In this document: piece by piece, positions 1 through 26,800 of the stretch
Numbering within the stretch: the first letter of the stretch is position 1
Layout of the letters: every line of letters begins with the position of its first letter
Assembly: GCA_965637545.1 (NCBI GenBank)
Contig: OZ281499.1
Span: 13,950,001 to 14,014,000 of the forward strand
Direction of reading: 5' to 3'
Length of the DNA: 64,000 nucleotides
Source of the DNA: Phallusia mammillata
Lineage: Eukaryota
Notes under the pieces: generated by a model
The model's database searches: none
What the model saw: only the letters and a program-made list of their open reading frames with translations
What the model was told of the DNA's origin: nothing
Translations under genes and position numbers: made by a program

Positions 1-739
1 ACTACAAGTGTTCATTTGAGTTATTTTATCACAGGGCCTTCTGTAGCTCAAATAATTACTGAAAATGATTTAGTAGATCAGGGGTGTCCAAAGTGCGGCC
101 CGCGGCTGTTGTCCTAAATTACGTTGCGTATGGCCCGCCATAGTTTCGATTGCGACTTCACACAAAAGCCTACCATGAAACTCTAATTAGCGGTAAAAAG
201 GTGTATACATAGTGCTGACACAAGGTCAAGGCAAATTTTATTTGCATAGTCACTTCATCATCACAGTTCCATTGTTGAACGGACAAGTAAACAGCAAGGA
301 CACCGAAAAAAACCGAAGGTTATCGAGTCAAGTGGCCTGTTATTTTAATTGTGGTTGAATTCCGTTTTGGGTATGTTCTGCCGTAGGATCGCAACCGACC
401 GCACGAGCCTGGCGGGGTACGTCCGGTTGCATATGACGGTGGTTGAACCGTCGGGTTCTGCTGGCCAAATGAAACCCGCCTAAACGGAAACACCAGCTCG
501 GTTCCTCGGAACGTTTCCTGTGATCCCGTAGGCAGACCCGGGTGTCCCGAGGACAGTTCGTTGCGACGATGAAATTGTTTTCGTCGAGCATCTCTTCCTC
601 CTCTGCTTTTGTAAGATCGATCGCGAGATCTCTGATGTTCGCTGGGAGAAGGTGCTGCACTGTCTTCGACCCGGATGGCCGATCTGAAAAACCGAATTCT
701 ACTGCAGTATTTCGTTCTTTTGTGTGTGACCAAGTTATC

Positions 740-2808
740 CAGTTTATTTATGTTATAGTATAGAATAAAAAAAAGTAAAATCGCACTAAGATAAAACTGA
801 AACACACACGGAAAAAACACAAAAGAAAAAAGGTGAAAACTAGGGTAGTTATGACATAGAAGAACAAGATGTATTGTATTTTTCTGATATGAGCAAGGAC
901 ACAGAAGTGAATTTATCGTTGAGGGGTCATATTGCCTTAATAAATGCAAGCGAAGCTGTTTTTTAAAAGAGGACAAGCGTGGCAGAGACTTGATATCGTG
1001 TGGTGAGTCTTCCCATACTTTTGGACCTCGATGACAAATTGATCTTGTGCCGAACGCGGTGTTTACGCGTGGATAAAAGTAGTTCTGGTTTTCAGCACTT
1101 CTGGTGTTGTGATGGTGCACTGACGCAATAGGTGTGAACAGGGAGTTGTATGTGGAAGGTAGTGTACCAGTACGAAACGCATGCAGTAGTTTGGCTACCT
1201 CAAGTTTGTCCCTCCCTCAAAAATGTCTTTAAACTTCAGAAGACGCAAGTCATGATATAGTGGAGTAGCGCGACATCGGTAAGGGCTGCGAGTAATAGCT
1301 CGCAAAATTTTGTTATGTTTGATGTTGAGGGTTTTAATTGATGCAGCGTATCCGCTACCCCACGCTGCGACAGCATATTGCAGATAGAGGTACAAAAGAG
1401 TAGTAAATAATACGAAGAAACTGTTGTCCAAAGTAGTCACGCAGCTTGTATATGATACCGCAGGCTTGTGCTAGTTTTCGTTCCACATGAGCTATGTGTT
1501 TCTCCCATTTTAACTGATCGTCAATATAAACTCCAAGGTATTTTGTTTCTGTTGATCGCTGTATTTGCTGCGATCCTATGGAAATCGAAAACTTCTGCGT
1601 GTTTGAGCGCTTAGAAGGACAAAACAGTAAATACGTTGTTTTACTTGTATTAAGAGATAGCTTGTTGTGGCGCATCCAGTTGTCAACATAAACGAGTTCA
1701 TTGTTTACGTTTGCCTGTAGATCAGTCAGCGACTCTGATGACATGCTTACGCACGTGTCATCCGCAAAGAGTTTCGTTGTAAATTTAGATGCCGTTGGTA
1801 AGTCATTTATGTAAAGCGAAAAGAGCAAAGGAGCCAGTGACGAACCGTGAGGGCAGCCACATGTTACATTCAGCAGTTGTGATGTTACGTTTGCTATGCG
1901 TGTGCATTGTTTACGATGACTTAAGTAGCTCCTGAACAGTTCTAAGGGGCTTCCCCGTATTCCATACTGATGCTCCAACTTCCACAACAAAACCCTGTGA
2001 TCGACTGTGTCAAATGCGTTGGACAGGTCTAAGAAAATAGCGCATGTGTATTGCTTTCGATCAAGCGCAGCTAACAGTCTTTCATGGATGTCCTAAATTG
2101 CCAGGGATGTGGATCGATTGCATCGAAAACCATACTGGTGAGTTGTTAACATTCCATTTTTTTCAACGTAGTTGTACAGACGTTGATATATAATTTTTTC
2201 AAAAATCTTAGCAAAAGGGGACAGTAGCGAAATTGGTCTGTAGTTAGTGCATTCAACTTGTGAGCCTGTTTTATAAATTGGTATTACTTCCGCAATTTTA
2301 AGTTCCCCAGGGTGGCTTTATGGTGGGGGGATTTTGAGGTGGTGGCATTACTGGCTGTGGAATGGATGATGCCATGTTTGCTCCTATGTTGGCAAAGAAC
2401 TGGTTAAATTTGCTGGCAACAGTGATTGGTCAGTAGTGCAATGTGCAGTACCATCTAGTTGTAGTTCAGCCGGAGCTTTTTGTAAAGTTTGTTTTCGGGA
2501 CAACAATCTATTGATGATTTTCCACATTTCACTAATATCATTTCTGTGATCTGTTAGTTCTTTTTCAATATACCTGTGCTTAGCATCTCTTAAAATGTGA
2601 TTGAGCTTGTTACGGTACTGTTTATATTGGTTGTATTTGCTTGTACATATTGGTTGTATTTGCTTGTACAAAAGCCTGACTTACATAATGCATGATACAT
2701 TTTATTTTTTATTTTGATTGACTTATAAATTCCCTTGCTTATCCAGGTTTTTTTGGCCAATTTCCTTCTTCTAGTAATTGTAGTTAACACAGCCAAATTC
2801 CATAACAC
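740..2808 (-). mobile_element. 5'-truncated CR1/L2-type non-LTR retrotransposon (RT pseudogene)
   Basis: Minus-strand motifs TWISKGIYKS, AIFLDLSNAFD, HGSSLAPLLFSLYINDL, LFADDT and C-terminal HHHNTRS..GPKVW..SFKKQLR. Boundaries approximate. Confidence 0.88.
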
Positions 2809-2917
2809 TGAGCATGTTAATCTTTCAACAGTAGTATTGATAACACATTATGACGCCACAATACACAATGAAGGTGTTTACAGCAAGAGTTATAATCTTT
2901 CTCTGCATTCATACAAG

Positions 2918-4560
2918 ATGGCGTCGGTTATCAAAAAGAGAAAAGTCAGCAGTGAGGGTCGACGTTTTCAAGAAAAATGGAAACTGTAATACTTTTTAAC
3001 TGAAAATCAAACGAATTGTGTTTGCCTAATTTGCCACGAGAGGGTAGCAGTTTTTAAAGAAAGTAATGTGAAAAGACATTGCCAGACAAAGCACGCCGCT
3101 GCGTTTGACAAGATAGAAGGCAGCTGTCGCCAAGAAAAGTTAAAGCAGCTTCTAGGCTTGCATCCCAACAGCGATTTTTTACGAGGACCTGTGGGTCTTA
3201 CGAAAACATCACTAAAGCTAAGTAGCCGTACTTATAGCGAAACACGGAAGACCATTTACAGAGGGTGCGTTTGTCAAAGATTGAGTTATGAAAATGGTGG
3301 AGAATATATGTCCTGAGAAGAAGCAAGAATTTAATAACGTTTGTCTGGCTCGCAACGTCGTTGCAAGAAGAATTGAGGACGTTTCGGAAAATATACAAAG
3401 ACAGGTATGAGAAAGGGGAGCAATGTTTGATTGTTTTTCATTGGCCTGCGATGAAAGCACAGATGCGTCTGATACGGCACAGCTATTAATTTTTATAAGA
3501 GGGGTTGATGACAACATGGATGTTACAGAAGAACTACTCGACCTGGAAAGTCTTAAAGGCCAAACAAGGGGAATAGATTTATTTGCGTCTGTTTGCGCAG
3601 CTGTTGACAAGACAAAGCTACAGTGGAGCAAACTTTGTGGAATAAGTACTGACGGTGCACCTGCCATGACTGGTGAACGAAGTGGGTTGGCCACACTGAT
3701 TTGCAATAAAGTCAGTGAAGAAGGTATATTTCTATTAAATTGCACTGCATTATTCGCCAACAGGCTCTCTGTGCAAAAGTTCTCAAACTTGATCACATTA
3801 TGGGACCAGTGGTAAAGGCAATCAATGCTATTCGCTCAAGAGCCCTTGATATCCAGGCAGAATACGGAGTTGTATTTTACTACAACGATGTTAGGTGGCT
3901 TAGTCAAGGGTAGGCAATGCAGCGGTTTTTCTCCCTTAGAAAGGAGATTAACAAACGGGAGGGGGCAATGCAAGAACTATCAGAACCTGCGTGGCTCACA
4001 GATTTGGCCTTTTTCGTTGACATAACAAAGCATCTAAATGCATTGAACGTCAACCTTCAAGGACGAGATGCAAAGGCCTTCAAAACCAAGCTGCAACTTT
4101 TTCGAAGACACTTATCCCAAACAGAAACCTGCACTGCACACTTTCCGTCTCTAAAACAAGTTCTCGACAGTTTACCCCGCAATAGCATGTGTGTTCAAAT
4201 AGCTAGGTATGCGACGGCTGTAGCGTCTCTTTCTGATGAGTTCTGAAATCGCTTTCGGGATTTTGCAGCCATTACAAAGGAATTGTTGCTTTTTTCTTCG
4301 CCCCTGACAGTATCCAGACGATGTTCCGTCCCAGTTGCAGCTCGAGCTAATTGAACTGCAATGTGACGACGAGTTGCGAAGCAGACATCAACAACTTTCT
4401 CTGGTAGAATTTTACCGACAGTTAGATAATGGCAAATTTCCAGAAATGCGAAGTTTTGCGAAAAAAATGCTGAGTTTGTTCGGCTCAACGTATTTGTGTG
4501 AGCAGACATTCTCAGTAATGAAGTTAAATAAAAGTCGATTAAGAAACGTCTTGCGTGATG
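2918..4560 (+). pseudogene. GTF2IRD2-like (Charlie) hAT transposase, frameshifted
   Basis: RRFQEKW, FSLACDESTDASDTAQLLIFIRG, ISTDGAPAMTG, WLTDLAFFVD, LSLFGSTYLCEQTFSVMK. Confidence 0.9.
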
Positions 4561-5439
4561 TCGTGAAAATGTTACTTAACACTTTAGTTGAAAGTTCGTT
4601 TACAATGTTTGTTAAATAAAATTCCTGTTTCAATTAATTTGTGTTCCAATTCTATGGTTAAAAACTTTGCCCAAAAACGTTGGCCCGCAGGAGGATTGTC
4701 ATTCTGGCGAAATGAACGACGAAGATATGGAAAATTATTTTACGCACGACTGCACAAAATTTCACACAATTTTTAAGACTTTTAATTTTGCAGGTGCCGT
4801 ATTTCAACACAACCAGACGTCCGGAGTCACCCGTACATGTTTGGAAATGGCATAGATACCTGGACAGGATTTCTACCAATAAAACCATTTCTACCAATAA
4901 AACCACTAGAAATGTCCGAAATTTAGGGTACAATATTGTAAGGAATTTTTCAAAATCAGCAAAATTGCCAATTTGGGCAATTGAAAAAAAGAAAAATCAT
5001 CTGCTTTTTTTTCATTCCATATAAAAGCAAAAAATAACGACAACAGTAAATACAAAAGGTACACAGCATTTATGCTTCTGCTGTTCAATGCGCGGCATTT
5101 GTTGCACAACTTGGTGGTTCAGCACAGCTTGGTTTCTTTTATTGTTTTTAATGTGATGAATTTTAAGCACTCCTATACAGCAAAACAACCCTAAATAAAC
5201 TCCAATACCAAACACTTCTTCAAGCAATGAATTTCATTAACTCCAAAGTTCTGTGGCGGTCATTGTTACGTAGTTAATGCCTCGTGTCAGTATGGATACA
5301 TGGCGTGGACATGTTTCATTATTTCTGCGTTGTCGTTACGTTTGTACGTTGATTTTACCTTTCTAGTACTTCATTCAAAATTGTTGAAGTCAAAACTGTT
5401 GTTCTCGTTTAGGTAACACAAGTGTGTTGTTCAGTAAGC

Positions 5440-6420
5440 TAAGCAAGTCAGGAGCTTTGATAGGTGTGTTTAGCATGTGCAGCAGTGTACATTATTAGGT
5501 ATGAAGTTATAGCCTGTTTTAAACAATTCCCGAAAATCAGAATTGTATAAAAATGGGAAGAAATGTAGACGAAAGCATGCCTAAAACCTTGATAATAAAA
5601 TAAATTTGGCGCGATTAAAGAGTTTTCTGCAAAATAACTTTTTGTCAGACACCTATACAATTTAGCATGTGCATGCATTATTGCCTCTATGACGTAACAG
5701 TAGGAACCTTAAAGTTTAAAGCCTAATCTAAACACTTTCCGAAAATGAGAATTGAATAAAAGTTGGCAGAAATGTAGACCAAAGCATGCTTAAAACCTTG
5801 AAAGTAAAATAAATTTGGCGCGATTACAGAATTTTCAGCAAAATAACTTTTTGTCAGACACCTATACAATTTAGCATGTGCACCATTTTGGCTGTGACGT
5901 GACGGCTAAGCCCTTGAGTTTACAACTTTTTTCAAACACTTTCCGAAAATGAGAATTGAATAAAAATTGGCATAAATGTAGACCAAAGCATGCTTAAAAC
6001 CTTGGTAATAAAATAAATTTGGCGCGATTAAAGAATTTTCAGCAAAATAACTTTTTGTCAGACACCTATACAATTTAGCATGTGTATGCATTGTTGGCTA
6101 TATGACGTAACAGTAGGAACCTTAAAGTTTAAAGCCTAATCTAAACACTTTCCGAAAATGAGAATTGAATAAAAATTGGCAGAAGTGTAGACCAAAGCAT
6201 GCTTAAAACCTTGATAATAAAATAAATTTGGCGCGATTAAAGAATTTTCAGCAAAATAACTTTTTGTCAGACACCTTTACAATTTAGCATGTGTATGCAT
6301 TATTGGCTATATGACGTAACAGTAGGACCCTTAAAATTTAATGTAAACACTTGGAATTAAAAGGTTAAAAGCTCACTCTGAACACTTTCCGAAAAGTAGA
6401 ATTCTCTAAAAATTAAAATA
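5440..6420 (-). repeat. Left subterminal satellite array, ~4.5 copies of a 204-209-bp unit
   Basis: GGCGCGATT recurs at 5608, 5817, 6021, 6230. The array is the reverse complement of the right-arm array. Confidence 0.93.
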
Positions 6421-6534
6421 AGTGAAAGCTATTCGGTTATAGTTGCATTTGTAAACATTGCTCATTTATGCTATCGCAGAAAACATTGATTTATTATTCA
6501 ACTGAGAAATATTGAAAACCTTTTGTAAAACAAC

Positions 6535-7214
6535 ATGGGAAGACGAACGCCTGCTGTAAAATATTAGAAGGGAGTCAGTGGAAAACAAACAGGCTATCTC
6601 CGTGCTGACGGTTCACCACTTCCTTCTGTGTTGTTGGTGACGGACAGCAACGGAAGGAACCTTGTTTACCCACGGGTGGTATCATGTAACAGTGATTCAT
6701 TCGTTTTTAATGCAATTTCTCTTCCAGGTGGCCATATTGACCATGGATGCATCGAAGTGGAGTTTGGGCGAAAGTTCGGCAACGTCGACTTTGTGGTACT
6801 AGCACTTGGCACTAACGACGTTGATTCAGGCAAATCCATCGCCTGCGACGAAGCAGCTTACCGAAGCTTGGTTGAGGCGTCCTGCAGCGTGTACCCCAAA
6901 GCGCAGGTAGAATTGAGACAAAGGATTTTCCGTCAATTCAAGTAATAGTTGGTCAATATGGACGAATATTGTCGCAGATTATTGTGGCTGGAATTCTTCA
7001 GCAAAGGGGGATCACGGGCACCTTGTTCCAGAGATCAAAAAGGTGTTGCGCAACCTCGCCACGGGAATGGGCATCAGCTTCCTGGACTTTACCATCGGCC
7101 ATAATCGAGAGCTTTGGCACGACCGCCTACACTTGTCTGACGTCGGTTTGCGTCATTACATGGCCAGTCTTGAGGCTCATATTCATGCCCTTCTTGCTGC
7201 TTCCAGCGTGCCAA
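6535..7214 (+). pseudogene. SGNH/GDSL-fold hydrolase exons of the MULE polyprotein (exons 6535-6906 and 6978-7214)
   Basis: LLVTDSNG (block I), PGG (II), LALGTND (III), WHDRLHLS (V, 7121-7132). GT-AG introns 6907-6977 and 7215-7286. One in-frame TAG (6565) and a frameshift at the G-run 7006-7010. Confidence 0.75.
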
Positions 7215-7465
7215 GTGAGTAGTTGTGTTATTTAAATTTTGATGGTTGATCCCTAAATATAACCATAATATATTTCAATATTTTAGAAAAAATGTTGGGC
7301 TTTGCCGAAACCGACGGAATAAAGATAACGAAGAAGAAGAAATTCCGAAGTCGGCTGTGTTTTGGATGTGTGGCTGACCACATTCGTCCCTCATCCAAAA
7401 AGGCTAATCGGGACATCACACAAACGCCTTTTCCCAGCTTTGATGCCACCAGAAGAGTTTCGACT

Positions 7466-7780
7466 GGAGCGAAGGGCAAGGTGGCTGAGGTTGCTGGACC
7501 CCCTAGCAAAGCTGACGGTGGAGCGAGGGGCAAGGTGACTGAGGTTGCTGGACCCCCTAGCAAAGCTGACGGAGGAGCGAAGGGCAAGGTAGCTGCAGTT
7601 GCTGGACCCCCTAGCAAAGCAGAACGTGGAGCGAAGGGCAAGGTGGCTGAGGTTGCTGGACCCCCTAGCAAAGCTGACGGTGGAGCGAAGGGCAAGGTAG
7701 CTGCAGTTGCTGGACCCCCTAGCAAAGCTGACGGAGGAGCGAAGGGCAAGGTAGCTGAGGTTGCTCGACCCCCTAGCAAT
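7466..7780 (+). repeat. Coding tandem repeat, 54 bp x ~5.8 (GAKGKVAEVAGPPSKADG)
   Basis: Units start at 7466, 7520, 7574, 7628, 7682, 7736, in frame within ORF 7292-8527. Confidence 0.95.
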
Positions 7781-8657
7781 GGCAACACAGGAAATCTTTC
7801 AGAGCTTGTTTCGTTTGTGCTGCTGCTGCTAAATGTTGCCGGACTTGTGATTTTCTGCCTGGGTCTGTTCAGTTTGTTTTATTTTGATTTTATACTGTAT
7901 GGTTTGAGTTCCACCGGCTTACCTCAATTACTTAAATTCGCCATTGGTCTAACGAAAATTGTTTTTAGCTGGATACTACAATCACGTCGGTTTCGTGGAA
8001 CATTGAAGCAAAGACAAAGAAATCTTTATCGAAAAAAAAAATGTTTAAAACAACGACCAGGTATCAATTTGCCATTTACTTCTCATTTGCTACATCTGCC
8101 TAAAATTGTTAAAATTGGGGGTGGGCCACAAAAGGCAAATTTCGCCGAGACTGTTAAAGTCATTTCGGATTACATGACCCAGCACAACTTACAAAAATTT
8201 AATCGAGACCGTAGTTTAGGATTGCTGCGCGAAAGTCACTTGTGGAAAAATATGCCAATAATGAAGCGGTTTAGGTTTTTACAAAGCTTTTGCAGCAAGC
8301 ACCGCGACGTAATTAGTAAAAACCTATGTTCACTTTCGGTAACCGTTTTGAACAAGGATGTTTTTGTTGACGATCAAAACAAGATTGATAACGGTCCAAT
8401 TATCGCTTTGGCGAAATGCTTAGACCATTATCCAAATGTTTCAAAGTTGCCATACCGAGCGGTAAAAGCTTTTTTGGAGTCATCCGCTTTAGCCGTAAAT
8501 TCAAAAAATCGACAGAGTTTGCAATAGATGGATAACTGACTTAAGATTCAGACAGGCTGTTCAGCACTCTTATACTGAAATAAATGGAGATTGCGATGTT
8601 GTTGTCAAACAATCTGAAAATAGTTCAGTCACTAATTCACTTAACGAATCCATTACG

Positions 8658-8760
8658 TATTGTGTTTGTCAAACCCCTTATGATGGTCGGTTAATGGTTG
8701 AATGCGAAACTTGCTCACAGTGGTATCACCCCAGTTGCGTATTTGATTGTTGTTCTCCCG
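8658..8760 (+). pseudogene. PHD finger of the MULE polyprotein
   Basis: YCVCQTPYDGRLMVECETCSQWYHPSCV; the frame is open upstream of the annotated 8694 start. Confidence 0.85.
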
Positions 8761-9399
8761 CAGTTACGTTTTCGGCTGTCGAGTGGAATCGTACTCATAT
8801 GGTTTGTCCTAATAGCAGGCATCGTTTTAGATCGTTTTATGAACACAAAATAATGGACTTAACAGATGGGCCCGAATCTGTTAAAAATAACTCGCCAGTA
8901 ACTGTTTTAAGTAATATTTTAGAGAGTTCGTCGTCTTGTGACCCCTCTGTCGTTTCTCCTACCTTACCAAAGACTGAATTTTGTGTATTGCCAGTGGCCA
9001 ACGATTCTTTGTCTCATTCTGTTACTATTAACGGCGAGAATGATCATTTAGTTTTGTATGAAAACGCTGAGTCGAACAAAACGCTTACTGAAGAATGTGT
9101 TGATAGTACTTGTAGCGACTTTTTGAGTGAGGATTGTTTTGTGGATAATGTTTTTGATGAACTTGGAAAAATAAATGACGCAACAAGATCAGAATATAAA
9201 CACAACGATGATATTAACATACAAGAAAAGTTTATTATTTCATTGCAAGAATGGCACTCTATGGTTAAAAATAGAAAAACAAACCACTTCCATGGTTCTC
9301 GATACGTTGAAATCACGTTGCATTACTTGCATCAAATTTATAGCGGTTGTGTGCCTAATGTAAAAAATAAATACCTGATTGATCCAAATGGAGTTGTTG

Positions 9400-11000
9400 C
9401 AATTTCTAAAGCAGATAAATGCTACAAGGAAGGTTGGATAAATTTTTACTGTGGTCATCAAAATTGTGAGACTTGTAATTGCGAAACTAAATTAGTGGTA
9501 ACGTTTTGGTCGTTTGTTGACAGAGTTGGAGGGCATGTTGAAATAAGTGGTAAAAGAAATCATCGTCCCGGATGTAAACGTAGTAGGCGTTGCTGTGGGC
9601 CAATGAGGAAAAAGCTTCGCAAATCTTTACAGAACCAAACCGCTGTTAAAAAATATAGGGAAATTTACGATGGCATGAAACCGGAGGAACGATGGTTAGG
9701 GGCCCACACTTTTTTACCGTCACAATCTGTATTAAATAATATTAAAAGTGAAAGTAATTATGGTCACCGAAAAAGCAAACTCTGGTTTATAAACCTCAAT
9801 TCGATTGGAAATGGATGAAAAACAAAATCGTTTTGTAAGAGTAATAAGTTTACACCCCCCAATGGTAATCCTGTACATAGATGCACCGATAAAAATCTTT
9901 CATCGCACTTGCATGTTTGACGTGGTTTACTTCAATGCGACCGGAAGTATTTTATGCCGCCTTCAAAATTACTCTGATTTCCAAGTTTACACTTTACTTA
10001 TTCGAAACCCGACACCAGGGAGCACACCGCTACCTGTTGCTACGTGCGTAACAAGTCACCACGACGCCAATACAATTAGTCACTTTTTAGAAAACTTTTT
10101 ATTTGATGCGGTAAAATTGTGTGGGACAGCGAAAAAACCCAAGTTGATAGTAATTGATGGCTCAATGGCAATGTGGAACGCTGTTTTAAAAGCAATGTGT
10201 CGCGAATCGCGCTTAGATTATTACAGGCGTTGTTACAGAATTGTAACAGGTGTACCTGGCGATTCCGACCTGCAAAAAAACATTTGTTGCCAATTGCTAT
10301 AGCCACGCTATGAAAGCAGCAAAAATTTTGTGTGGTAAATACTGCAAAAACAAAAAACTAGTCAAAACCTACTTGTTTTGGATAAACGTCATGTTTTCGT
10401 GTTCGACCGTTAAAGAGTTAGACGAAGCAGTAGAAAGCTTTTTCATTTTAACCAACAGCGAAGCTTCTTCCTCATTGGTCGAATTGCATTTTAAAAGACT
10501 TAAGTCACAAGGTCAGTCGCAATCCGCTCGGTTCGACCATGACAATGACGGCAAAACAGTTACAGACGAAACCGACTATTTTTTTACTGCAAAAGCATCG
10601 GACAAGTTGCAAGAAAGTCACTCACCCTTCTATGCCAGATACAAACGAAAATTAGATACCGTTCTTAAAACAATATCTGATTCTACACCACCGACCCAAA
10701 TGCATACAAATATATACCATAACACTGAGATTTCGAGTAAAGTTTTGGAAATAACTTTAAGCAGAATCTGTTCTACTTCAAAATTTATGCTTGGAGATTT
10801 GTCCCGACATATGCACAAAGGCACAACTTCCGGTGATCAATCGCTAAAGTACAAACAGCATAGTGATATATGTAACAACCTTAAACAACTAGGCCATCAA
10901 AGCATTTTGAAGAACAACCGAACCCAAGGAATTATTGAACAACATTTTGGAGATTTAAAAACAAATGTGATAGATTGGAAACGAATTGCTAAAATTGACG
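9400..11000 (+). pseudogene. NOF/Rehavkus-type Mutator DDE transposase core
   Basis: Cys/His-rich region (CGHQNC..GKRNH), VYFNATGS (expected Asp reads Asn at 9934), PLPVATC..HH, LIVIDGSMA (10156), CYSH (10295-10306), QGIIEQHF (10937). Frameshifts near 9810 and 10275. Confidence 0.8.
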
Positions 11001-11489
11001 ACTTCGTTGTAAAGTATTATCAAGCCATAATGATTTTGCAAAAACTGTTTGCTGACTCCCACATTTATCTTAAATCCACCCAAAATCGTACTTCGAGCAA
11101 GAAACTATTGACTCCTGTGATTGAGTCAAAATTTAGAAAAAGAAAACGCAAACGAACAAGTTATTACTCTTCAGATACTGCTTTTAAGCAGCTACAATAC
11201 CGGAATGAAACTTCGAAAGAAACAGGAATGTCCCCTAGTCCTTTCACGGCACGATTTGCTTTTTGCCCTGACCCGGAAATATTGATTTCAATTTGCAAAC
11301 CTGTTGCAGATTTCATTTGGCACCAAATTCTCCACAACACCCAGTCCATATTTGAAACTGCAATAATCACTAAATGGCGCCATTCATTGTCATGGTTGGA
11401 CATGTGTTCGGTTTGCCCAAAACCAAGGGGCAAAACGTATATTGCGCTTACTGAAAATTTTGCTCGTTCTCACAACGATGCGACGCTTG

Positions 11490-12075
11490 GGTGGTTAACG
11501 GATAAAGTTGTAGATTGCTATATTACTAGAACTGTCGCCATATGTAATTCGATTTCGCCTGGTAAATTTGCATGTGTGTCAAGTGTTTTAGCTTCTGAAA
11601 TTTTAAGTGGAAAATAATTAAAAACATGCAACGAGCATTAAAAGGAATAATAAACAGTGACGGACAGTTATGTGAAAATGTTGTTTTACCCGTTTTGTAT
11701 GAAAATCATTTTGTTGTGTTGTGGTTAAGTCAGTTGAATAATACTCTAGTTCTGTACGACTCGGTTGTTTCCAGCAGCGATCGCTTGAAAAGTTTAGTAA
11801 ACAAATACCTTATTCCAGCCCTTAAATGTATAACTGACCAGGACATTACATTTACAAGTGATTCGACAGTCGTTCAGCAAGACCAGTCTAGTTGTGGATT
11901 ATGCGTTTGTTATACAGTTGATCGCCTTGCATCAGCCATTCTTGAGATGATTCGACAGTCGTTCAGCAAGACCAGTCTAGTTGTGGATTATGCGTTTGTT
12001 ATACAGTTGATCGCCTTGCATCAGCCATTCTTGAGATTCGCCATGTAAACTTTGACGTTACGAACTATCGAGTTT
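11490..12075 (+). pseudogene. Ulp1/SENP-like (C48) cysteine protease domain
   Basis: WLTDKVVDCY, PVLYENHF (His 11707), LYDS (Asp 11758), QQDQSSCG (Cys 11893). Confidence 0.82.
11860..12037 (+). repeat. Exact 89-bp tandem duplication disrupting the Ulp1-USP frame
   Basis: 11860-11948 is repeated at 11949-12037; removing one copy puts ORFs 11626 and 12078 in the same frame. Confidence 0.95.
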
Positions 12076-12077
12076 GG

Positions 12078-13661
12078 TTGGTGTACGCATTGGTTCAAGA
12101 TTCATTAAGTTGTAACTTAAAAATAATAAATTTCTCGAAGAAGAAAACTGGGGTCTCAGTTGGTCTTCCAAACAAGTTTAATAACTGCTGGATGAATTCT
12201 GTACTGCAGGGTATACAAAGTATATTTGTAGATTTACCGAGTGTTTTAATTGATTGTAACGATCTAAATGGGAGAGTTGCGAACGTAATTTGCGACCTCC
12301 GACGAGGGAAAGTGGAAGAGGCAGCTTACCTTCGGTTAGTCCGCGATATGTGTTGTCATCTTGGTTGGGTTCTCGGCCAACACCAAGATGCAAGTGAATT
12401 TTTGCAAATCTTTGATTTCAATTATGTTTTGAAAGGTTGTAATTTAGATTGTACGTTTCAGCTACATATAACAAAAACGTGTAAGTCATGTGACCAACAA
12501 TCTAATATTCTTCATAAACAATCGGTTTTAGCTTTGCCAGTTTTTGAAACAATTCCAGATAATAGCAATATAAATGCATACTGTGAAGAGAAATTTCGTG
12601 GCGTGAAGTTAGGTTTTTGTGCTAGTTGCAACTTGGAAAAGGAAATCGTTTTTGAATCACACCTAGAAAATGTATCAGATATTTTGTGCGTTGTTTTGCA
12701 TAGAAACATAACAGGCCAAAAAACAACCAAACGCGTAAAAGCCACACAATTGTTGTCGTTTAAATCCGCTTCAGAAGAGTATGTTTACCAGTTAATGTCT
12801 GTTGTTGTTCACGTCGGAACGAAAGTTGATTCTGGGCATTACATTACCTACAAAATTAATGGCGATAAAATAACTGAACTTAACGATTTGGTAGTAAAAG
12901 ACATGTTTTGGGACTCTGTTGAGGAAAATATTTCCACAGGATCTTGTATTTTGTTTTATCGAAAAAAATCAGTGAATGCACTTTGTAAAGATCAATCCTC
13001 TGAAAGTGACGAGGGTGATCAAACGATTAAAGTAGTCCCTAGAAAGCGTCGTCGTATGGACGCATCAGCCGTTGTCACTACGGAACGAATAGATTATAGG
13101 GACATAGAATTAATGCAGACAGACAGCAAGGGAGAGGTAGTGGCGCTTTCTGGTCCAGAGATACTTGAAGCTTCCGTAGCAGAAGTTTACAAATTTGTCA
13201 ATTGTCAGCTTTTGTCCGCTATGTCAAAGTCGTTTGAGGTCGGCAAACATGAACTTGAGTGTTATCGTTTATGCCTTTTTTCGAAAAACCGTAGAAAGCA
13301 GTTGACCGGTTACAACTTAAGGTCAACTTTGGAAAAAACATCATTGTTAACAGACACGTTTCAAAACCTAATGCGATTTTTAGATTATTCACTTTGTCGA
13401 TTTCGCGTCCGACAACGTCTTATGGGTAAGCAAGTATATAGGGAAACAAGTGTTTGCAAGGAGTTGAAGCCAGAAATAGCCATCCAAGGAAGCATTATTC
13501 ACAGTTTGCTTCAGGTTGAAACATTCGACATATCTTTTTTACCAACAATGTGTTATAAGTTACATGGAAGCAGCCATTTACTACATAATGCATGTCGAAA
13601 GTTTAACGTATATGAAAGCGTCCAAACGAATAGGAATTTCGGCAGTAGCATATGTGAATAA
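12078..13661 (+). CDS. Ubiquitin-specific protease (C19) domain plus unknown C-terminal region; C-terminus of the MULE polyprotein
   Basis: GLPNKFNNCWMNSVLQ (Cys 12186), QHQDASEFL, CKSC..CASC, VVHVGTKVDSGHYITY (His 12837), ELND. 527-aa open frame. Confidence 0.88.
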   Translation: MVYALVQDSLSCNLKIINFSKKKTGVSVGLPNKFNNCWMNSVLQGIQSIFVDLPSVLIDCNDLNGRVANVICDLRRGKVEEAAYLRLVRDMCCHLGWVLGQHQDASEFLQIFDFNYVLKGCNLDCTFQLHITKTCKSCDQQSNILHKQSVLALPVFETIPDNSNINAYCEEKFRGVKLGFCASCNLEKEIVFESHLENVSDILCVVLHRNITGQKTTKRVKATQLLSFKSASEEYVYQLMSVVVHVGTKVDSGHYITYKINGDKITELNDLVVKDMFWDSVEENISTGSCILFYRKKSVNALCKDQSSESDEGDQTIKVVPRKRRRMDASAVVTTERIDYRDIELMQTDSKGEVVALSGPEILEASVAEVYKFVNCQLLSAMSKSFEVGKHELECYRLCLFSKNRRKQLTGYNLRSTLEKTSLLTDTFQNLMRFLDYSLCRFRVRQRLMGKQVYRETSVCKELKPEIAIQGSIIHSLLQVETFDISFLPTMCYKLHGSSHLLHNACRKFNVYESVQTNRNFGSSICE

Positions 13662-15044
13662 AATGTAAATTGATACCGTTTTTTTATTGTGTGTATTGAC
13701 ATTCATATATTTTAAAAACACCTAAACCCTGAAATATTGAATAAATTTAAACTGGAGATTGTGTGTTAATTATTTTGCACTGTTTCGGTAAATAAACCAT
13801 GCACATCGATACTGCTGTACATTATATAATTCTCCGACAAACATATATTGAAAGTTCTTTAATCGCGCCAAATTTATTTTATTACCAAGGTTTTCAGCAG
13901 GCTTTGGTCTACATTTCTGCCAATTTTTATTCAATTCTCATTTTCGGAAAGTGTTCAAAAAAAGTTGTAAAACTCAAGGGCTTAGCGGTCACGTCGTAGC
14001 CAAAATGGAGCACATGCTAAATTGTGTAGGTCTCTGACAAAAAGTTATTTTGCTGAAAATTCTTTAATCGCGCCAAATTTATTTTACTGTCAAGGTTTTA
14101 AGCATGCTTTGATCGACATTTCTGCCAATTTTTATTCAATTCTCATTTTCGGAAAGTGTTTAAATTCAGCTTTAAACTTTAAGGTTCCTACTGTTACGTC
14201 ATATAGCCAATGATGCATACATGTTCTGAATGGTATAGGTCTCTGACAAAACGTTATTTTGCGAAAAATTCTTTAATCGCGCCAAATTTATTTTATTACC
14301 AAGGTTTTAAGCATGCTTTGGTCTACATTTCTGCCAATTTTTATTCAATTCTCATTTTCGGAAAGTAAAGACTTAGCCGTCTCGTCACAGCCAAAATGGT
14401 GCACATGCTGAATTGTATAAGTCTCTGACAAAAAGTCATTTTGCTGAAAATTCTTTAATCGCGCCAAATTTATTTTATTACCAAGGTTTTAAGCATGCTT
14501 TGGTTTACATTTCTGCCAACTTTTATTAAATTCTCATTTTCGGAAAGTGTTCAAATTAGGCTTTAAACTTTAAGGTTCCTACTGTTACGTCATATAGCCA
14601 ACAATGCATACACATGCTAAATTGTATGTGTCTGACAAAAAGTTACTTTGCTGAAAATTCTTTAATCGCGCCAAATTTATTTTATTACCAAGGTTTTAAG
14701 CATGCTTTGGTCTACACTTCTGCCAATTTTTATTCAATTCTCATTTTCGGAAAGTGTTTAGATTAGGCTTTAAATGTTAGGGGCCTACTGTTACGTCATA
14801 GCCAATAATGCATATACATGCTGAATTGTATAGGTGTCTGACAAAAAGTTACTTTGCTGAAAATTCTTTAATCGCGCCAAATTTATTTTATTACCAAGGT
14901 TTTAAGCATGCTTTGGTCTACACTTCTGCCAATTTTTATTCAATTCTCATTTTTGGAAAGTGTTTAAATTCAGCTTTAAACTTTAAGGTTCCTACTGTTA
15001 CGTCATATAGCCAATGATGCATACATATTCTGAATGGTATAGGT

Positions 15045-15969
15045 CAGGGGCGGGCAACTTCTACAGTCGGCGGGCCTGATATGGGAAAATGAAGTACTTG
15101 GCGGGCCGGATTCCTGAATCGATACATTAATCGCGTATTTATCCAATGATTTAAAACGGATTTTTGACCACCTAAACCAGGGGTGGGGAACCTTTTCGTT
15201 TATAAAAGCTACCTAACGATTTATCGACACTCGTGTAGGCCGCATAGACTATTTCCCAGGCCAAGGGCAGTGAGGTTCAAACTTTTTGACTTACACAATG
15301 GTCGTTTTGCTATTTCCTCGTAGTTTGTAGGACTTACGGTCCCAGCTAATTAAAATTCCTCACTACATTTTCATCTTCACTACAACATTCAGGATTTATT
15401 TAACCTAGAAATTGCTGAACCTGGAGTTTTTGGTAGTCCTAACTATGGAAATCGCTTTATGTACCACTATGGGACCACATGGGTCTTGTTTGAAAACCGC
15501 TGCCCTGGAACTAATCAAAAAATAATCTGCAATAAAGTCAAAAATACGTTTCTGTCTATTTTTTTCAGCGCCTGGTGCAGTCGGTTATATCAACATCTTA
15601 AAAATGTATTTTGCCATCGAAGGCCGCACTTAGTGCCCTGAAAGACCGCATGTGGCCTTTAGGCCGCAGGTTCCCCACCCCTGCCTGAACTAGGCTATAC
15701 GTGTGGAAACAAAGAAAACCGTTAAAGTAGGACACACACGGTTGGTAGTTATGTCGTAACAATGGACGTATGGTGCAATGGTAACAACGGCGGGAAATTT
15801 TTTTGCTATTGGGGAGCGTTACTGTGCGTTACAACTGTAATTTGACGTAGTAAGCAAGTAATGGGGGATTGCGGCAGACTGTGGCCGCGGGCCACATTAT
15901 CATGTAAGACCGGAAACTGTCCGCGGGCCGCTCAAAATCCCGTCGCGGGCCGTATGTTGCCCACCCCTG
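15045..15969. mobile_element. hAT MITE inserted in the satellite
   Basis: TIRs CAGGGGCGGGCAAC / GTTGCCCACCCCTG; TSD GTATAGGT at 15037-15044 and 15970-15977. Confidence 0.92.
15178..15683. mobile_element. hAT MITE nested in the previous MITE
   Basis: TIRs CAGGGGTGGGGAACC / GGTTCCCCACCCCTG; degenerate flanks CCTAAAC / CCTGAAC. Confidence 0.85.
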
Positions 15970-18434
15970 GTATAGGTCTCTGACAAAACGTTATTTTGCG
16001 AAAAATTCTTTAATCGCGCCAAATTTATTTTATTACCAAGGTTTTAAGCATGCTTTGGTCTACATTGCTGCCAATTTTTATTCAATTCTCATTTTCGGAA
16101 AGTGTTCAAAAAAAGTTGTAAAACTCAAGGGCTTAGCGGTCACGTCGTAGCCAAAATGGAGCACATGCTAAATTGTGTAGGTCTCTGAAAAAAGTTATTT
16201 TGCTGAAAATTCTTTAATCGCGCCAAATTTATTTTACTGTCAAGGTTTTAAGCATGCTTTGATCGACATTTCTGCCAATTTTTATTCAATTCTCATTTTT
16301 GGAAAGTGTTTAAATTCAGCTTTAAACTTTAAGGTTCCTACTGTTACGTCATATAGCCAATGATGCATACATATTCTGAATGGTATAGGTCTCTGACAAA
16401 ACGTTATTTTGCGAAAAATTCTTTAATCGCGCCAAATTTATTTTATTACCAAGGTTTTAAGCATGCTTTGGTCTGCATTTCTGCCAATTTTTATTCAATT
16501 CTCATTTTCGGAAAGTAAAGACTTAGCCGTCTCGTCACAGCCAAAATGGTGCACATGCTAAATTGTATAAGTCTCTGACAAAAAGTCATTTTGCTGAAAA
16601 TTCTTTAATCGCGCCAAATTTATTTTATTACCAAGGTTTTAAGCATGCTTTGGTTTACATTTCTGCCAACTTTTATTAAATTCTCATTTTCGGAAAGTGT
16701 TCAAATTAGGCTTTAAACTTTAAGGTTCCTACTGTTACGTCATATAGCCAACAATGCATACACATGCTAAATTGTATGTGTCTGACAAAAAGTTACTTTG
16801 CTGAAAATTCTTTAATCGCGCCAAGTTTATTTTATTACCAAGGTTTTAAGCATGCTTTGGTCTACACTTCTGCCAATTTTTATTCAATTCTCATTTTCGG
16901 AAAGTGTTTAGATTAGGCTTTAAATATTAGGGGCCTACTGTTACGTCATATAGCCAACAATGCATACACATGCTGAATTGTATAGGTGTCTGACAAAAAG
17001 TTACTTTGCTGAAAATTCTTTAATCGCGCCAAATTTATTTTATTACCAAGGTTTTAAGCATGCTTTGGTCTACACTTCTGCCAATTTTTATTCAATTCTC
17101 ATTTTCGGAAAGTGTTTGAAAAAAGTTGTAAACTCAAGGGCTTAGCCGTCACGTCACAGCCAAAATGGTGCACATGCTAAATTAAATAGGTCTCTGGCCA
17201 TAAGTTATTTTGCTGAAAATTCTTTAATCGCAAATTTATTTTATTACCAAGGTTTTAAGCATGCTTTGGTCTACATTTCTGCCAGTTTTTATAGAATTCT
17301 CATTTTCGGAAAGTGTTTAAAATCAGTTGTAAAATTCAAGGGCTTAGCCGTTACTTCACAGACAAAATGGTGCACTTGCTAAATTGTATAGGTCGCTTAA
17401 AAATCATAATTGGAGATCCAGATCAAAACGGTATTTTTTTTTCTATCAAAAAAAAGAAGTTGTTTTTAACATTAAAATATATTAGTTTTTGGAAACACTG
17501 CAGAAAAATATTTCTTCTTTCTCCCTATTTTCATTTCGCCAGAATGACAATCCTCCCGCAGGCATATAGACCTGATAAAAAATGGCCCCCATTAAAAAAA
17601 AGTTTGGACACCCCTGTAGTAGATCATGACCATGAGGATGGAAGTTTAACTAATCTCTCTGTAAAAAAAGAAAAAATCACAGTTTAGCAAATGATCCAGG
17701 TTTGTGGCTTGATTTCTCTGCTGATGATGTGGCTTATTGGATCGCCTGTGGACCCAGTAACGCCAACACCACAATGGACCATTTGAAGTCTTACCGGCGT
17801 TTTAGTAGTGGCAAACCAGTAGTACGGTACTGTTCACAGAAACTGTTTATCGGGACAAAAGTCAATGGTGAAAAATACAAGAGAGAGTGATTACTGTATT
17901 CACTATCAACAGGATCAATTTATTGTTTTGTTTGTAAACTTTTTGCTCCAAAAATATCGCGTATTGTAATTGACAATCATGGGAAAGGCTTCAATCGTCG
18001 AAACTCTCTGTTAACATATTTAACTCGCAGACAAGTTTCGAGGTTGGATTCACAATTGGAGAAACAAATTCAAGATTAGTGTGATTCCTGGGAACATGTC
18101 TTGAGGCGTGTCATAGCTGTTATTTGTACGTTAGCTGAACGCTGCTTGGCTTTTCGGGGATCAGACGACATGTTTGGATCATTGCACAACGGGAATTTTT
18201 TAGGAGTGCTTGAACTCATCAGCCAGTTTAATCCATTTTTAGCAGGCCACATTTCTAAATGTGGAAATTCTGGAAGAGGAAATACTTCTTACTTGTCAAA
18301 ACCACCTGCGAGGAAATTATTGAACTGATGGCACAAAAGGTCCATGCGTTCTTGTTGACGAAGTTAAGTCTTCTGGTTGTTTTAGTCTGTCCGTTAATTA
18401 AACACGAGATCTATCACATATCGATCAGCTAAGG

Positions 18435-23646: not shown

Positions 23647-23805
23647 TGTAATGTATATTGCGCCACCTTGTGACGCTTTAAGTATGTTGCCCCGCCTTGT
23701 GACGACCTTGCCGCATGCCCATATAAAAGCGTGCGTTTAACCTTTACGGGCATTCGAAGTGTCTTGTAGCTGTGGGCTTGTTGTGTCGCTGATTCATTCA
23801 ATACG

Positions 23806-23819
23806 TGGTGTCAGAAGTG
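23806..23819 (+). promoter_or_regulatory. Primer-binding site, probably tRNA-Leu
   Basis: TGGTGTCAGAAGTG directly follows the 5' LTR and is complementary to a ...CACUUCUGACACCA tRNA 3' end. Confidence 0.75.
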
Positions 23820-23839
23820 CGTTCACGCCTCTAATTAAG

Positions 23840-26800
23840 ATGGACAAATCAGCAATTTCTCTACCCCCGGCAATGCAGTGGAATGGCAATATGGCCGAGA
23901 ACTGGAAAAGGTTTATCCAGAGATTTAAGCTCTATCTGACGGCGATTGGTGGTGACAGCAAGTCCGACAAAAGTAAGTCTGCGTTGCTTCTTCATGTTAT
24001 GGAAGGTGGTGGCATTCAGATTTACAATTCTTTTAAGTTCGAAACTGGAAATGACATGAAATTTGATGTCATAGTGAATGAATTTCAACTGTATTTCTGC
24101 CCCAAAAAGAACGTAACATTTGAACGTTATAAACTTAACAACCGAAACCAACAGGATGGTGAAAATAGTGATCAATATGCCACCGAGCTAAAAAATCTTT
24201 CTGCACATCGTGAATTTAAGAATCTTAGTGACTCATTAATCCGGGATAGAGTGGTTTGTGGAATTTCTGACGACAAGGTTCGTGAAGTTCTTTTAAAAGA
24301 AGTTGACCTGACTCTTGAAAAATGTCTTTCTATTTGTCGTTCAAATGAAGTAGTTAAACTACAAGCTGCTGTAATTAGGAGCCAAGAAAATAACGTGTGG
24401 GTTGTCAATAATCAACAATTAACCCCGGGGACAAGTCGTTTCAGGTCCAACAAAAGGAACCTGCGGTGCGAAGTATGTGCTTTAATTCACGCTTCAGGTG
24501 CATGTCTAGCCCGGGGAAAACCTTGTTTCCATTGTGGAAAACTTGGCCACTACTCAAGATGTTGTAGCAACCGAAGAGTCAATGAAGTGAAGGAAACTTC
24601 TTTTCACGTTAATACAGTGAGTACCGTTGTCACTTCAAAAGATTGGTTAGTTCCATTGAGATTAAATGGAAAACAGTTTACCTGTAAAATTGACACTGGT
24701 GCCCAGGTGAACCTAATTTCGCTATCAGATATTAAAGCTATTTCCAGTACACCTCGTATCGAAAGTACCAATATTGTGCTAACTGCGTTTGCCAATCACA
24801 AGATATTTGTGTATGGTGTTTGCACTTTAAATGTCACATTCCGAAACCATGCGCACGTGATGAAGTTCTTTGTTGTCCAAGCTAAAACTCAACCACTTAT
24901 CGGTCTTTTTGGTGCAGAGGCGTTAATGCTTGTCAATCGTGTACATGCAGTGGAGTCTATAGAGCAGTGTGGTAATCTTGTCCGCGAATACGAGGATATT
25001 TTTAATGGTCTCGGTTGTCTTCCAGATACATACTCAATAAGGTTGAACTCCAATGCCAGTCATCCATCCGAGTCGAAAAGTTCCGTGTCTGCTGAAACCA
25101 AAGTTAAAAGAAGAACTTCAGAGAATGAAAGGATTAGGTGTTATAACAGAAGTGACTGAACCAACCAGATGGGTAAACTCGTTAGTAATTGTGAACAAAA
25201 AGAACGGAAAACTTCGTGTTTGTCTTGATCCCCGTGACCTCAATAAATCAATCATGCGTGAACATTACATGTTACCCACTCGGGAGGAATTGATGTCACA
25301 ATTTAGTAATGCAAAGTTTTTTAGCAAGTTGGATGCTGTGAGTGGTTTTTGGCAAATAAAAATTGACGAAGAAAGTTCGAAGCTGTGTACATTTAATACT
25401 CCCTTCGGAAGGTACAGGTTTTTGCGTTTACCGTTTGGTATCTCGTCCGCCCCAGAAGTATTTCATCGTGCTGTACATTCCTTGTTTGAGCACATGGATG
25501 GTGTTGACACGTCAATGGACGATATTATTGTGTGGGGCAGTTCCAAAGAAGAACATGACAGGCGACTCCACATGGTTTTGAAACAAGCTAGGAAGTCAAA
25601 TTTACGATTGAATCGTGAAAATGCGTTTTTTTTGTCAATCGTTTAACGTTCATGGGAGATGTTTTAAGTGCAGGTGGTTTGCATCCAGATTCCAAGAAGG
25701 TTCGAGCCATTGAGACGATGTCGCGACCAGCAAACAAGCGTGATAGTCAACGCTTTCTGGGCATGGTGAACTATCTTGCACGGTATATTCCCGATGTGTC
25801 AGAAAAAACTGCACAGCTTCGCTCACTGGTGCATAAAGATAGTGAATGGAACTGGACCAGTAACGAAGAAAAAGCGTGGATGGAATTAAAGAGGGTAATT
25901 TCTAGCCAACTCGTTCTTAAACAGTTTAATCCTGTACTTCCAATAAAGGTATCCGCAGACGCCTCAAAAGAAGCTCTTGGTGCGGTATTGCTTCAGATGC
26001 ATGACAAAGAATGGTATCCTGTGTCCTACGCCTCTAGATCCTACACGCAATGATTGATGCTGAAACGCGCTACGCACAAATTGAAAAGGAACTCCTTGCG
26101 GTAACGTTTGCGTGTGAGCATTTTCATCAATTCATATATGGTCAACACATATGCAAACTGATCACAAGCCATTAGTTCCATTGTTTAAAAAAAACTTAAA
26201 CAATTGTCCAATAAGGGTACGTCTGATGATACGTCTGCATTCGTATGACTTTAGTGTAATCTATACTCCAGGAAAGTTCATGCTCACAGCCGATGCTTTG
26301 TCGAGAAGTGTTTCCCAAGAAACCGAAGATTTTCAATCACATGATGTGGCACGTTATGTTCATTTGGTTGTGTCATCACTTCCAATCTCCTCCAATGCTA
26401 TGGCGCAACTTCGTGAAGAAACTGAACGAGATCCCCAGTCAATAGACATCCTGCATTACGTTTACAATGGTTGGCCGGAACGTTCCGCAAATTGCACACC
26501 AGACTCCCAGGTATTTTGGAAAGTCCGTGATGAACTGCCAGTAAATGATGGTGTCCTGTGTAAAGGAAGCAAAATAGTCATTCCCCGGAAAATGAGACGG
26601 TCAATTCTAGCGAAGCTGCATGAAGGTCACATGTATGCGCTACAGACCGCGTTTGCAAAAAGAACCCTTGAATCCACATGAAATTCCCAAATTTCCCTTT
26701 GAAAAAATAGGTGTTGATTTATGTTCGTATAATGGTCGGTCGTATTTAGTAGTTGTTGATTATTATTCAGGTTATCCCGATGTTTATTGTATTAACAACA

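Follow-up and report, generated by a model that had tools for sequence, protein, structure and literature searches.

A Probable Dead Copy of a NOF-like Mutator Transposon in Phallusia mammillata Whose Gene Joins PHD, Transposase, Ulp1 and USP Domains

The DNA analysed here is a 64,000-nucleotide stretch of Phallusia mammillata (GenBank assembly GCA_965637545.1, contig OZ281499.1, positions 13,950,001 to 14,014,000 of the forward strand), which we refer to as the window and within which all positions below are counted. At 4692-17554 it holds an element of 12,863 bp that is very probably a dead copy of an autonomous-type, NOF-like Mutator transposon, with foldback-style arms and one three-exon gene. 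The domains encoded by that gene are arranged in the order SGNH esterase, 18-amino-acid (aa) repeats, PHD finger, Cys/His-rich domain, DDE transposase, Ulp1 protease, USP deubiquitinase and C-terminal tail. The ends of the element are marked by terminal inverted repeats (TIRs) within a target-site duplication (TSD), and its arms by tandem arrays, one of which is interrupted by a nested miniature inverted-repeat transposable element (MITE):

4684-4691, left TSD, CCCGCAGG, identical to 17555-17562
4692-4716, plus strand, left 25-bp TIR, AGGATTGTCATTCTGGCGAAATGAA, exact match
4717-5519, left subterminal unique segment of 803 bp, without an equivalent at the right end
5520-6341, left arm, four tandem copies of a unit of ~209 bp
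13851-15044, right arm, part 1, ~209-bp units in the opposite orientation to those of the left arm
15045-15969, nested 925-bp MITE in the right arm, with its own TIR, CAGGGGYGGGCAAC, and its own 8-bp TSD, GTATAGGT
15970-17394, right arm, part 2, ~7 more units
17530-17554, minus strand, right 25-bp TIR, exact match to AGGATTGTCATTCTGGCGAAATGAA
17555-17562, right TSD, CCCGCAGG, identical to the left copy

The 25-mer AGGATTGTCATTCTGGCGAAATGAA has two exact matches in the 64-kb window, where none is expected by chance, and no further copy of the TIR or of the element body is present there. A G/C ambiguity at the junctions allows an alternative reading as a 6-bp TSD with a 26-bp TIR. The inverted ~209-bp arrays of the two arms are 85-95% complementary. 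The right array (13851-17394) amounts to ~12.6 units in total, interrupted by the MITE. Both arrays stop short of the termini, being separated from the TIRs by unique sequence of 803 bp on the left and 135 bp on the right. Because the MITE has inverted ends of its own, matching at 13 of 14 positions, and its own 8-bp duplication, we take it to be a later insertion that is foreign to the element. A second internal inverted pair, CAGGGGTGGGGAACC, lies inside the MITE at ~15179 and ~15670. Scans with Rfam and for tRNA genes returned no match.

Between the arms, the stretch from 6568 to 13658 is covered by a chain of overlapping open frames on the plus strand. All features of the gene lie on the plus strand:

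6535-6906, plus strand, exon 1, with ATG at 6535, a premature TAG at 6565-6567 and SGNH blocks I-III
6637-6654, plus strand, SGNH block I (TDSN)
6808-6822, plus strand, SGNH block III (GTND)
6907-6977, plus strand, intron 1, 71 bp, GT-AG, moving the reading from frame 0 to frame 2
6978-7214, plus strand, exon 2, which encodes the latter half of SGNH, block V included, and holds the G5 frameshift
7118-7132, plus strand, SGNH block V (DRLH)
7215-7286, plus strand, intron 2, 72 bp, GTGAGT...AG, frame kept
7287-8657, plus strand, linker, open in frame 1 to 8524, holding the A6 frameshift at 8503
7465-7779, plus strand, 54-bp (18-aa) repeat inside the linker, 5.8 copies
8658-8800, plus strand, PHD finger (YCxC...CxxC..WYHxxC...HxxC)
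9177-9792, plus strand, conserved Cys/His-rich domain on the N-terminal side of the transposase, presumed to bind DNA
9793-11160, plus strand, DDE catalytic region, with the D1 site at 9934-9936 (Asn), D2 at 10156-10158, C(2)H at 10295-10306 and Glu at 10937-10939
11126-11155, plus strand, basic KFRKRKRKR within the DDE region
11486-12036, plus strand, Ulp1/C48 protease, with His at 11707-11709, Asp at 11758-11760 and Gln/Cys at 11875-11907
12150-12970, plus strand, USP/C19 deubiquitinase, with the Cys box at 12180-12209 and the His box at 12831-12851
12971-13661, plus strand, C-terminal tail and stop codon, first ~150 residues conserved with the related protein P0007

The preliminary description of this DNA had read it as a single element bounded by TIRs and a TSD, in which two GT-AG introns, about five frameshifts, one stop and one 89-bp duplication separate the parts of a protein of some 2300 aa. 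Each of these parts was recovered. The 25-bp TIRs and the 8-bp TSD CCCGCAGG are perfect, the two introns of 71 and 72 bp make the correct frame changes, and all five frameshifts, the stop and the duplication could be located. When the gene is spliced and one copy of the 89-bp duplicate is removed, it comes to 6,892 nt, or ~2,297 codons.

Relatives of the element, designated L for loci and P for proteins, were found on contigs from at least eight samples, one TARA sample included, and they bear on the gene structure directly. The reading that begins at ATG 6535 (MGRRTP...) resembles the N-terminus MLGWRTP... of L010, with the TAG falling at codon 11. The position of intron 1, between '...KA(Q/E)' and 'I(I/V)...LPQ', is common to L005 and L006, where the intron is ~1 kb and 0.2 kb long, unlike the 71 bp seen here. 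This shared position within SGNH is good evidence that intron 1 is real.

The domains differ in how readily they are recognised. In the case of the USP, the match to Pfam UCH reaches 44 bits against a cut-off of 23.9 (expectation value, E, 2.5e-11), the boxes NNCWMNS and SGHYITY align to USP30, and the USPs of P0007 and P0008 match the same model at E 1e-22 to 1e-25. The Ulp1 domain scores 16.9 bits against the C48 cut-off of 20.7 in the window and 20.6 bits in P0004. A profile built from nine family sequences matches SENP1, SENP2 and SENP8 only in the PDB (E 0.002-0.05), and the catalytic His, Asp and Cys as well as the oxyanion Gln are all in place. Ulp1 and USP share one frame, and the catalytic residues of both are present. 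The PHD finger scores 22.4 bits against a cut-off of 24, its last ligand pair being H-x2-C rather than C-x2-C, and the finger is kept in L001, L004, L005, L006 and P0149. Finally, the SGNH domain matches Pfam Lipase_GDSL_2 at E 3e-4, which is under the Pfam cut-off, and its family profile finds SGNH hydrolases as the top three PDB matches, albeit weakly (E 0.045-0.27). The second best of these is 4c1b, the esterase of ZfL2-1 ORF1p (E 0.15). Block II in the window is PGG, in exon 1. Outside the window, L010 has block I, L001 has block V, and L005 and L006 each have blocks II, III and V, so that every block is kept wherever another locus covers it. Pfam thus bears out the earlier domain calls for the USP alone, with SGNH, PHD and Ulp1 below cut-off in this copy; these three are backed instead by family alignments and profile searches.

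The reading frames point to a single polyprotein as the probable product of the gene, in this lineage at any rate. Frame 1 runs without a stop through 412 codons, beginning with exon 3 and reaching 8524 (chance probability ~1.6e-11), the linker frame ends 25 nt past the opening of the PHD frame, with the switch in the A6 run, and the PHD frame contains no ATG upstream of the finger. One chain is favoured because of these three features. Several observations weigh on the other side. The linker between SGNH and PHD shows no detectable homology in other loci, and it includes a hydrophobic stretch, which would be odd for a nuclear protein. The distance from SGNH to PHD is 1.4 kb in the window but 4.7-7.5 kb in L001, L005 and L006, with a nested Tc1 element present in one of these three loci. 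The SGNH frame of L005 and L006 stops soon after block V, and in L017, L021 and L022 no SGNH was found over the 7-8.7 kb that precede the PHD. Because the linker is without homology, SGNH is not found at these three loci and the hydrophobic stretch is present, SGNH may be a separate or alternatively spliced product.

Taken to its full extent, this would make the element a two-product one, in which SGNH, the repeats and the hydrophobic stretch form an ORF1-like protein or isoform (ORF, open reading frame), PHD-transposase-Ulp1-USP forms a second, and no 2,300-aa chain exists. The ~280 aa that precede the PHD in P0149, which lack SGNH, would fit such an arrangement, as would the stand-alone ORF1 or ORF3 esterases of retroelements (PMC3905857, PMC5408684). 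The continuous frame of the window and the missing ATG argue the other way, and we consider two products rather unlikely. Of the single polyprotein of the preliminary description, the tie between SGNH and PHD is the less secure part; it is carried by the 412-codon frame, and the distant or missing SGNH at other loci tells against it. The 54-bp repeat region is also open on the opposite strand, as a 186-aa ORF at 7228-7788 (minus strand), most probably a side effect of the repeat.

The lesions in the gene are of several kinds. The five frameshifts are short indels at G5 7006-7010, A6 8503, ~9800, A7 10274 and an A4 run at ~11607. Since the relatives read without gaps through the junctions at 9800, 10274 and 11607, the breaks at these positions are frameshifts rather than introns. 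A tandem duplication of 89 bp with identical copies (11859-11947 and 11948-12036) shifts frame 0 to frame 2, and deletion of one copy reconnects the two. The first catalytic Asp, nearly invariant in the relatives, is Asn in this copy (AAT, 9934-9936). Because of this substitution and the seven other lesions, the copy is dead and unable to be active.

It could be supposed that the frameshifts are assembly errors and that the genomic copy is intact and potentially active. Indeed, four of the five lie in the G5, A6, A7 and A4 runs, which are usual sites of long-read indels, and the TIRs and TSD are perfect. The shift at ~9800, however, lies outside any single-base run, and neither the codon-11 TAG nor the 89-bp duplication nor the Asp-to-Asn change is of a kind typical of assembly. 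We regard an intact genomic copy as improbable.

As the relatives show, the architecture extends well beyond the window. The full series of SGNH, PHD, N-terminal domain, the two DDE halves, Ulp1 and USP recurs in this order, all on one strand, in L001 and in L005 together with L010, at 25-53% identity. L006 follows the series from SGNH and PHD as far as the first DDE half, where it is truncated. In P0004 a single uninterrupted ORF extends from the C-terminal part of the transposase through Ulp1 to the USP Cys box, and P0007 and P0008 each have Ulp1, USP and tail in one uninterrupted ORF in which active-site motifs are present. In L011 and L021, Ulp1 is reached at the contig ends. The recurrence at 25-53% identity makes the colinear domain set a trait of the family and not an accident of this copy, and on sequence grounds the order PHD-transposase-Ulp1-USP is a conserved family feature.

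The arms of these relatives are less clear. L001 has foldbacks of 20-bp repeats and L005+L010 has right-side arrays, and no clear left arm or TIR pair was found for either, so that the placement of SGNH inside the TIRs is not established for these loci. The inverted arrays of the 20-bp tandem repeat at L001:428-907 and 1987-2871 lie directly 5' of the truncated SGNH of this related element, and they are either its foldback arm or a separate small foldback element. Loci from cyprinid fish and MDSQ, 27-32% identical, show neither Ulp1 nor USP in such flanks as are available and are for this reason placed in a more distant group. In the cyprinid fish relatives, a weak PHD-like match (E 0.047) occurs ~4.8 kb downstream of the DDE core (L007:14818-14928, L008:14801-14911 and L009:13395-13505), which may represent a Rehavkus-like arrangement.

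These comparisons also bear on whether the accessory domains are recent host captures of the Pack-MULE type (MULE, Mutator-like element), or a nested ORF1 of a long interspersed nuclear element (LINE), with no function for the element. MULEs are known to pick up host fragments (PMC8277862, PMC6431247), the esterase and PHD are modules of LINE ORF1 (PMC4120745), and the window is crowded with other transposons. Against this, the domain order recurs across samples at 25-53% protein identity with the catalytic residues kept, the position of intron 1 is common to separate loci, and domain scans find no reverse transcriptase or endonuclease inside the element. The USP, moreover, is far from cellular USPs, with 142 matches at E<=1e-3 among 1.84 billion representative proteins, and its best single-domain matches are members of the family. 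Capture without function is therefore very unlikely in our judgement. The nearest cellular relatives of the USP (P0005, P0017 and P0021) contain 3-10 tandem USP domains in USP17-like arrays. Long multi-USP proteins such as P0005 were considered as transposons and rejected as tandem cellular USP arrays, the high score of P0005 arising because ten domains are summed.

The assignment of the transposase draws on alignments and on fold. Searches with family alignments gathered ~35 related protein fragments. In an alignment of 27 sequences FDATG is nearly invariant and is followed by IDGS and then by NC(L/Y)SH. In a second alignment TQGIIEQHFxxLK is invariant, with the K seven residues past the E. 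The family thereby shows the series D...D...C(2)H...E with E(7)K, the window copy having Asn at D1; this is the motif rule that Yuan and Wessler are said to have given for Mutator in 2011. The fold was examined through P0154, a relative 45% identical to the D1-D2 piece of the window, whose AlphaFold2 model (27 sequences) has a predicted local distance difference test (pLDDT) score of 80.5 and places D1 on strand 1, D2 after strand 4 and C(2)H after strand 5. A model of P0148 (6 sequences) was unusable, at pLDDT 42.6, and was dropped.

With the P0154 model, the best match in Swiss-Prot is Drosophila NOF (P16320; E 1.5e-9, template-modelling (TM) score 0.69), followed by FAR1/FHY3, Kluyveromyces lactis Alpha3, ZSWIM1/3/9 and IS256-family transposases. 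The best match in the ESM Atlas is a 'NOF-FB 120.7 kDa protein' cluster (TM 0.82), with MULE clusters next; among the members of the NOF-named cluster, 45% carry Peptidase_C48 and 34% carry PHD. In the PDB, the ISCth4 transposase, of the IS256 type, ranks first, and hAT/Transib/RAG and P entries score lower. Matches among AlphaFold DB clusters include 'nof-fb' proteins, one MULE protein and two ~1,100-aa proteins automatically named as USPs. The language-model neighbours of P0148 are all PF10551 MULE. Because NOF, FAR1/FHY3, ZSWIM and IS256 are closest in the fold searches, the modelling supports a NOF-like transposase within the Mutator (MULE/IS256) superfamily. The FB-NOF/Mutator type named in the preliminary description is in this way upheld, through fold searches with the model of a relative and not through Pfam.

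This assignment has evidence to contend with. The Pfam families MULE, Transposase_mut, DDE and SWIM match neither the window pieces nor the 27 family members, the sole near-match being one family member to ZSWIM1-3_RNaseH-like (E 0.036). The fold evidence comes from a relative rather than from the broken sequence of the window itself. An hhalign comparison of the family with a second MULE in the window (54491-55564) is not significant, and the D2-to-E spacing is ~270 aa here as compared with ~120 aa in that canonical MULE. The TSD of 8 bp, or 6 bp in the alternative reading, is outside the Mutator/MULE range of 9-11 bp, and 9 bp is reported for Rehavkus (PMC6446971). Membership in another superfamily, whether Zisupton/KDZ with its 8-bp TSD and Ulp1, hAT or P, is hardly credible, since in spite of the 8-bp TSD, the long, hAT-like D2-to-E insertion and the lack of a Pfam MULE match, the structural neighbours are NOF, FAR1/FHY3, ZSWIM and IS256 throughout, the PDB hAT/Transib/RAG and P entries rank under ISCth4, and no Pfam KDZ or hAT match was obtained. 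Zisupton/KDZ had been our first guess because of the 8-bp TSD and Ulp1, the latter being a domain that Bohne et al. reportedly described in Zisupton in 2012; it was dropped, as the fold neighbours are all NOF or MULE and no KDZ model in Pfam matches. The 8-bp TSD and Ulp1 are common to Zisupton and the element, and neither is diagnostic.

The NOF-like Mutator reading carries a predicted life history. From the fold, motifs, TIRs and TSD we infer cut-and-paste transposition by the DDE transposase, an insertion of this type having presumably given rise to the 8-bp target duplication. The three-exon gene would once have encoded ~2,300 aa, from the SGNH esterase through the C-terminal tail, and the copy later gained the five frameshifts, the early stop, the 89-bp duplication, the Asp-to-Asn change and the nested MITE. 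Because the active sites are conserved over deep divergence, the accessory domains are likely to serve the element, and the family would have kept the accessory enzymes because they are helpful to it. The PHD finger might tether the protein to histone H3 tails, and Ulp1 and USP could remove SUMO and ubiquitin, with chromatin or repair factors or the transposase itself as possible substrates. The outcome may be the relief of SUMO/ubiquitin-dependent silencing, the steering of repair at excision and insertion breaks, or a longer life of a transposase that avoids degradation. The first of these is the candidate role that the preliminary description had put forward as a counter-silencing toolkit. 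The esterase may act as it does in LINE ORF1 proteins, for which membrane or lipid targeting has been proposed. The predicted roles in silencing reversal, repair steering and transposase protection are not discriminated by the present sequence data.

A more specific possibility is that of a NOF-like lineage with a chromatin- and protein-modification kit, in which the PHD finger brings the deSUMOylase, the deubiquitinase and the esterase to the element or its target and thereby erases silencing or repair signals. We consider this doubtful, but if true, a dual SUMO/ubiquitin eraser would for the first time be known from a transposon, and it would have been retained across animal lineages. Transposons with one ubiquitin-like protease are known, and the reason for its presence has never been tested. 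Here, two different proteases stand in tandem with active sites intact across copies that share a quarter to a half of their residues, and their retention with active sites despite this divergence argues that they are used by the element and are not mere passengers. The value of the system lies in the family rather than in this dead locus. The family offers a tractable way to ask whether mobile DNA manipulates SUMO/ubiquitin signalling, be it for escape from silencing, for steering of repair or for transposase stability.

Elsewhere in the window, the second MULE is a canonical transposase ORF at 54491-55564 on the minus strand, with the motifs GADKTF, GSDDEKA, CNEH and TNNNSESLNHVLK; it gives a weak Pfam MULE match (E 0.006) and is unrelated in sequence to the element studied here. 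Other transposons are dense in four regions:

320-1990, minus strand
23759-25646, plus strand
28494-30545, plus strand
33154-34134, plus strand

These regions contain reverse transcriptase fragments, an aspartyl protease of the long terminal repeat (LTR) type with a reverse transcriptase, and two hAT-like genes, the domains of the latter being DUF4371, DUF659, the hAT dimerisation domain and a Spin-doc zinc finger.

Several known systems share parts of this architecture. In the literature searched, which did not extend to Repbase Reports, neither a tandem Ulp1-USP on a transposase nor an SGNH esterase in a DNA transposon was found. The novelty suggested at the outset for the combination was overstated, since fusions with Ulp1, PHD and C19, and esterase and PHD modules as such, have been published; the tandem Ulp1-USP and the SGNH make the family a probable further variation on a known type. 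The closest likeness is to Drosophila FB-NOF (P16320), which is the best structural match of the DDE core and likewise has inverted arms of tandem repeats. The two differ in sequence, with only ~20% identity, and in the placement of the arrays, which in the present element are subterminal and begin 829 bp inside the left end and 160 bp inside the right; the present TSD measures 8 bp, and this family has a USP after Ulp1 and an N-terminal SGNH.

Rehavkus, reported from arthropods and annelids only, is defined by a PHD together with a 9-bp TSD and a tandem array that precedes the 3' TIR (PMC6446971, Dupeyron et al. 2019). The PHD at 8658-8800 and the array at 13851-17394 before the 3' TIR resemble this definition, whereas the TSD is 8 rather than 9 bp and Ulp1, USP and esterase are not listed in that description (PMC6446971). 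Ulp1, sometimes together with PHD, is also reported for Ginger1 and for Mutator transposases from hydra, lancelet and plants, and Bao, Kapitonov and Jurka (2010) suggested that SUMO/ubiquitin proteases serve transposition, proposing a role in DNA repair (PMC2836005). Those elements share with ours a C-terminal Ulp1, at times with a PHD, on a cut-and-paste transposase, but they have one protease domain, and a tandem USP or an esterase is not described for them (PMC2836005).

A USP-type deubiquitinase on a DNA transposase has a precedent in XP_001314237.1 of Trichomonas vaginalis, which joins transposase_11 to peptidase C19 (PMC2836005). That protein belongs to an IS4/IS5-like superfamily and has no Ulp1, PHD or SGNH. 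The UniProt entries A0A820XIE7 and A0A819CL05, of ~1,100 aa, have the same DDE fold as the family (TM 0.69-0.80) and are named 'USP domain-containing' or 'Ubiquitin carboxyl-terminal hydrolase 36', the likeness being one of fold and annotation. Finally, the esterase and PHD are ORF1 modules of CR1/L2/RTEX LINEs (PMC4120745, PMC3905857), and GDSL esterase ORFs occur in LTR and Penelope-like elements (PMC3905857, PMC4120745, PMC5408684). The element resembles these in having an SGNH esterase and a PHD as accessory modules, the similarity to ZfL2-1 being weak, and differs in that they are retroelements with the esterase on a separate ORF. Such a module has so far been described in retroelements, and the N-terminal SGNH would extend it to a DNA transposon.

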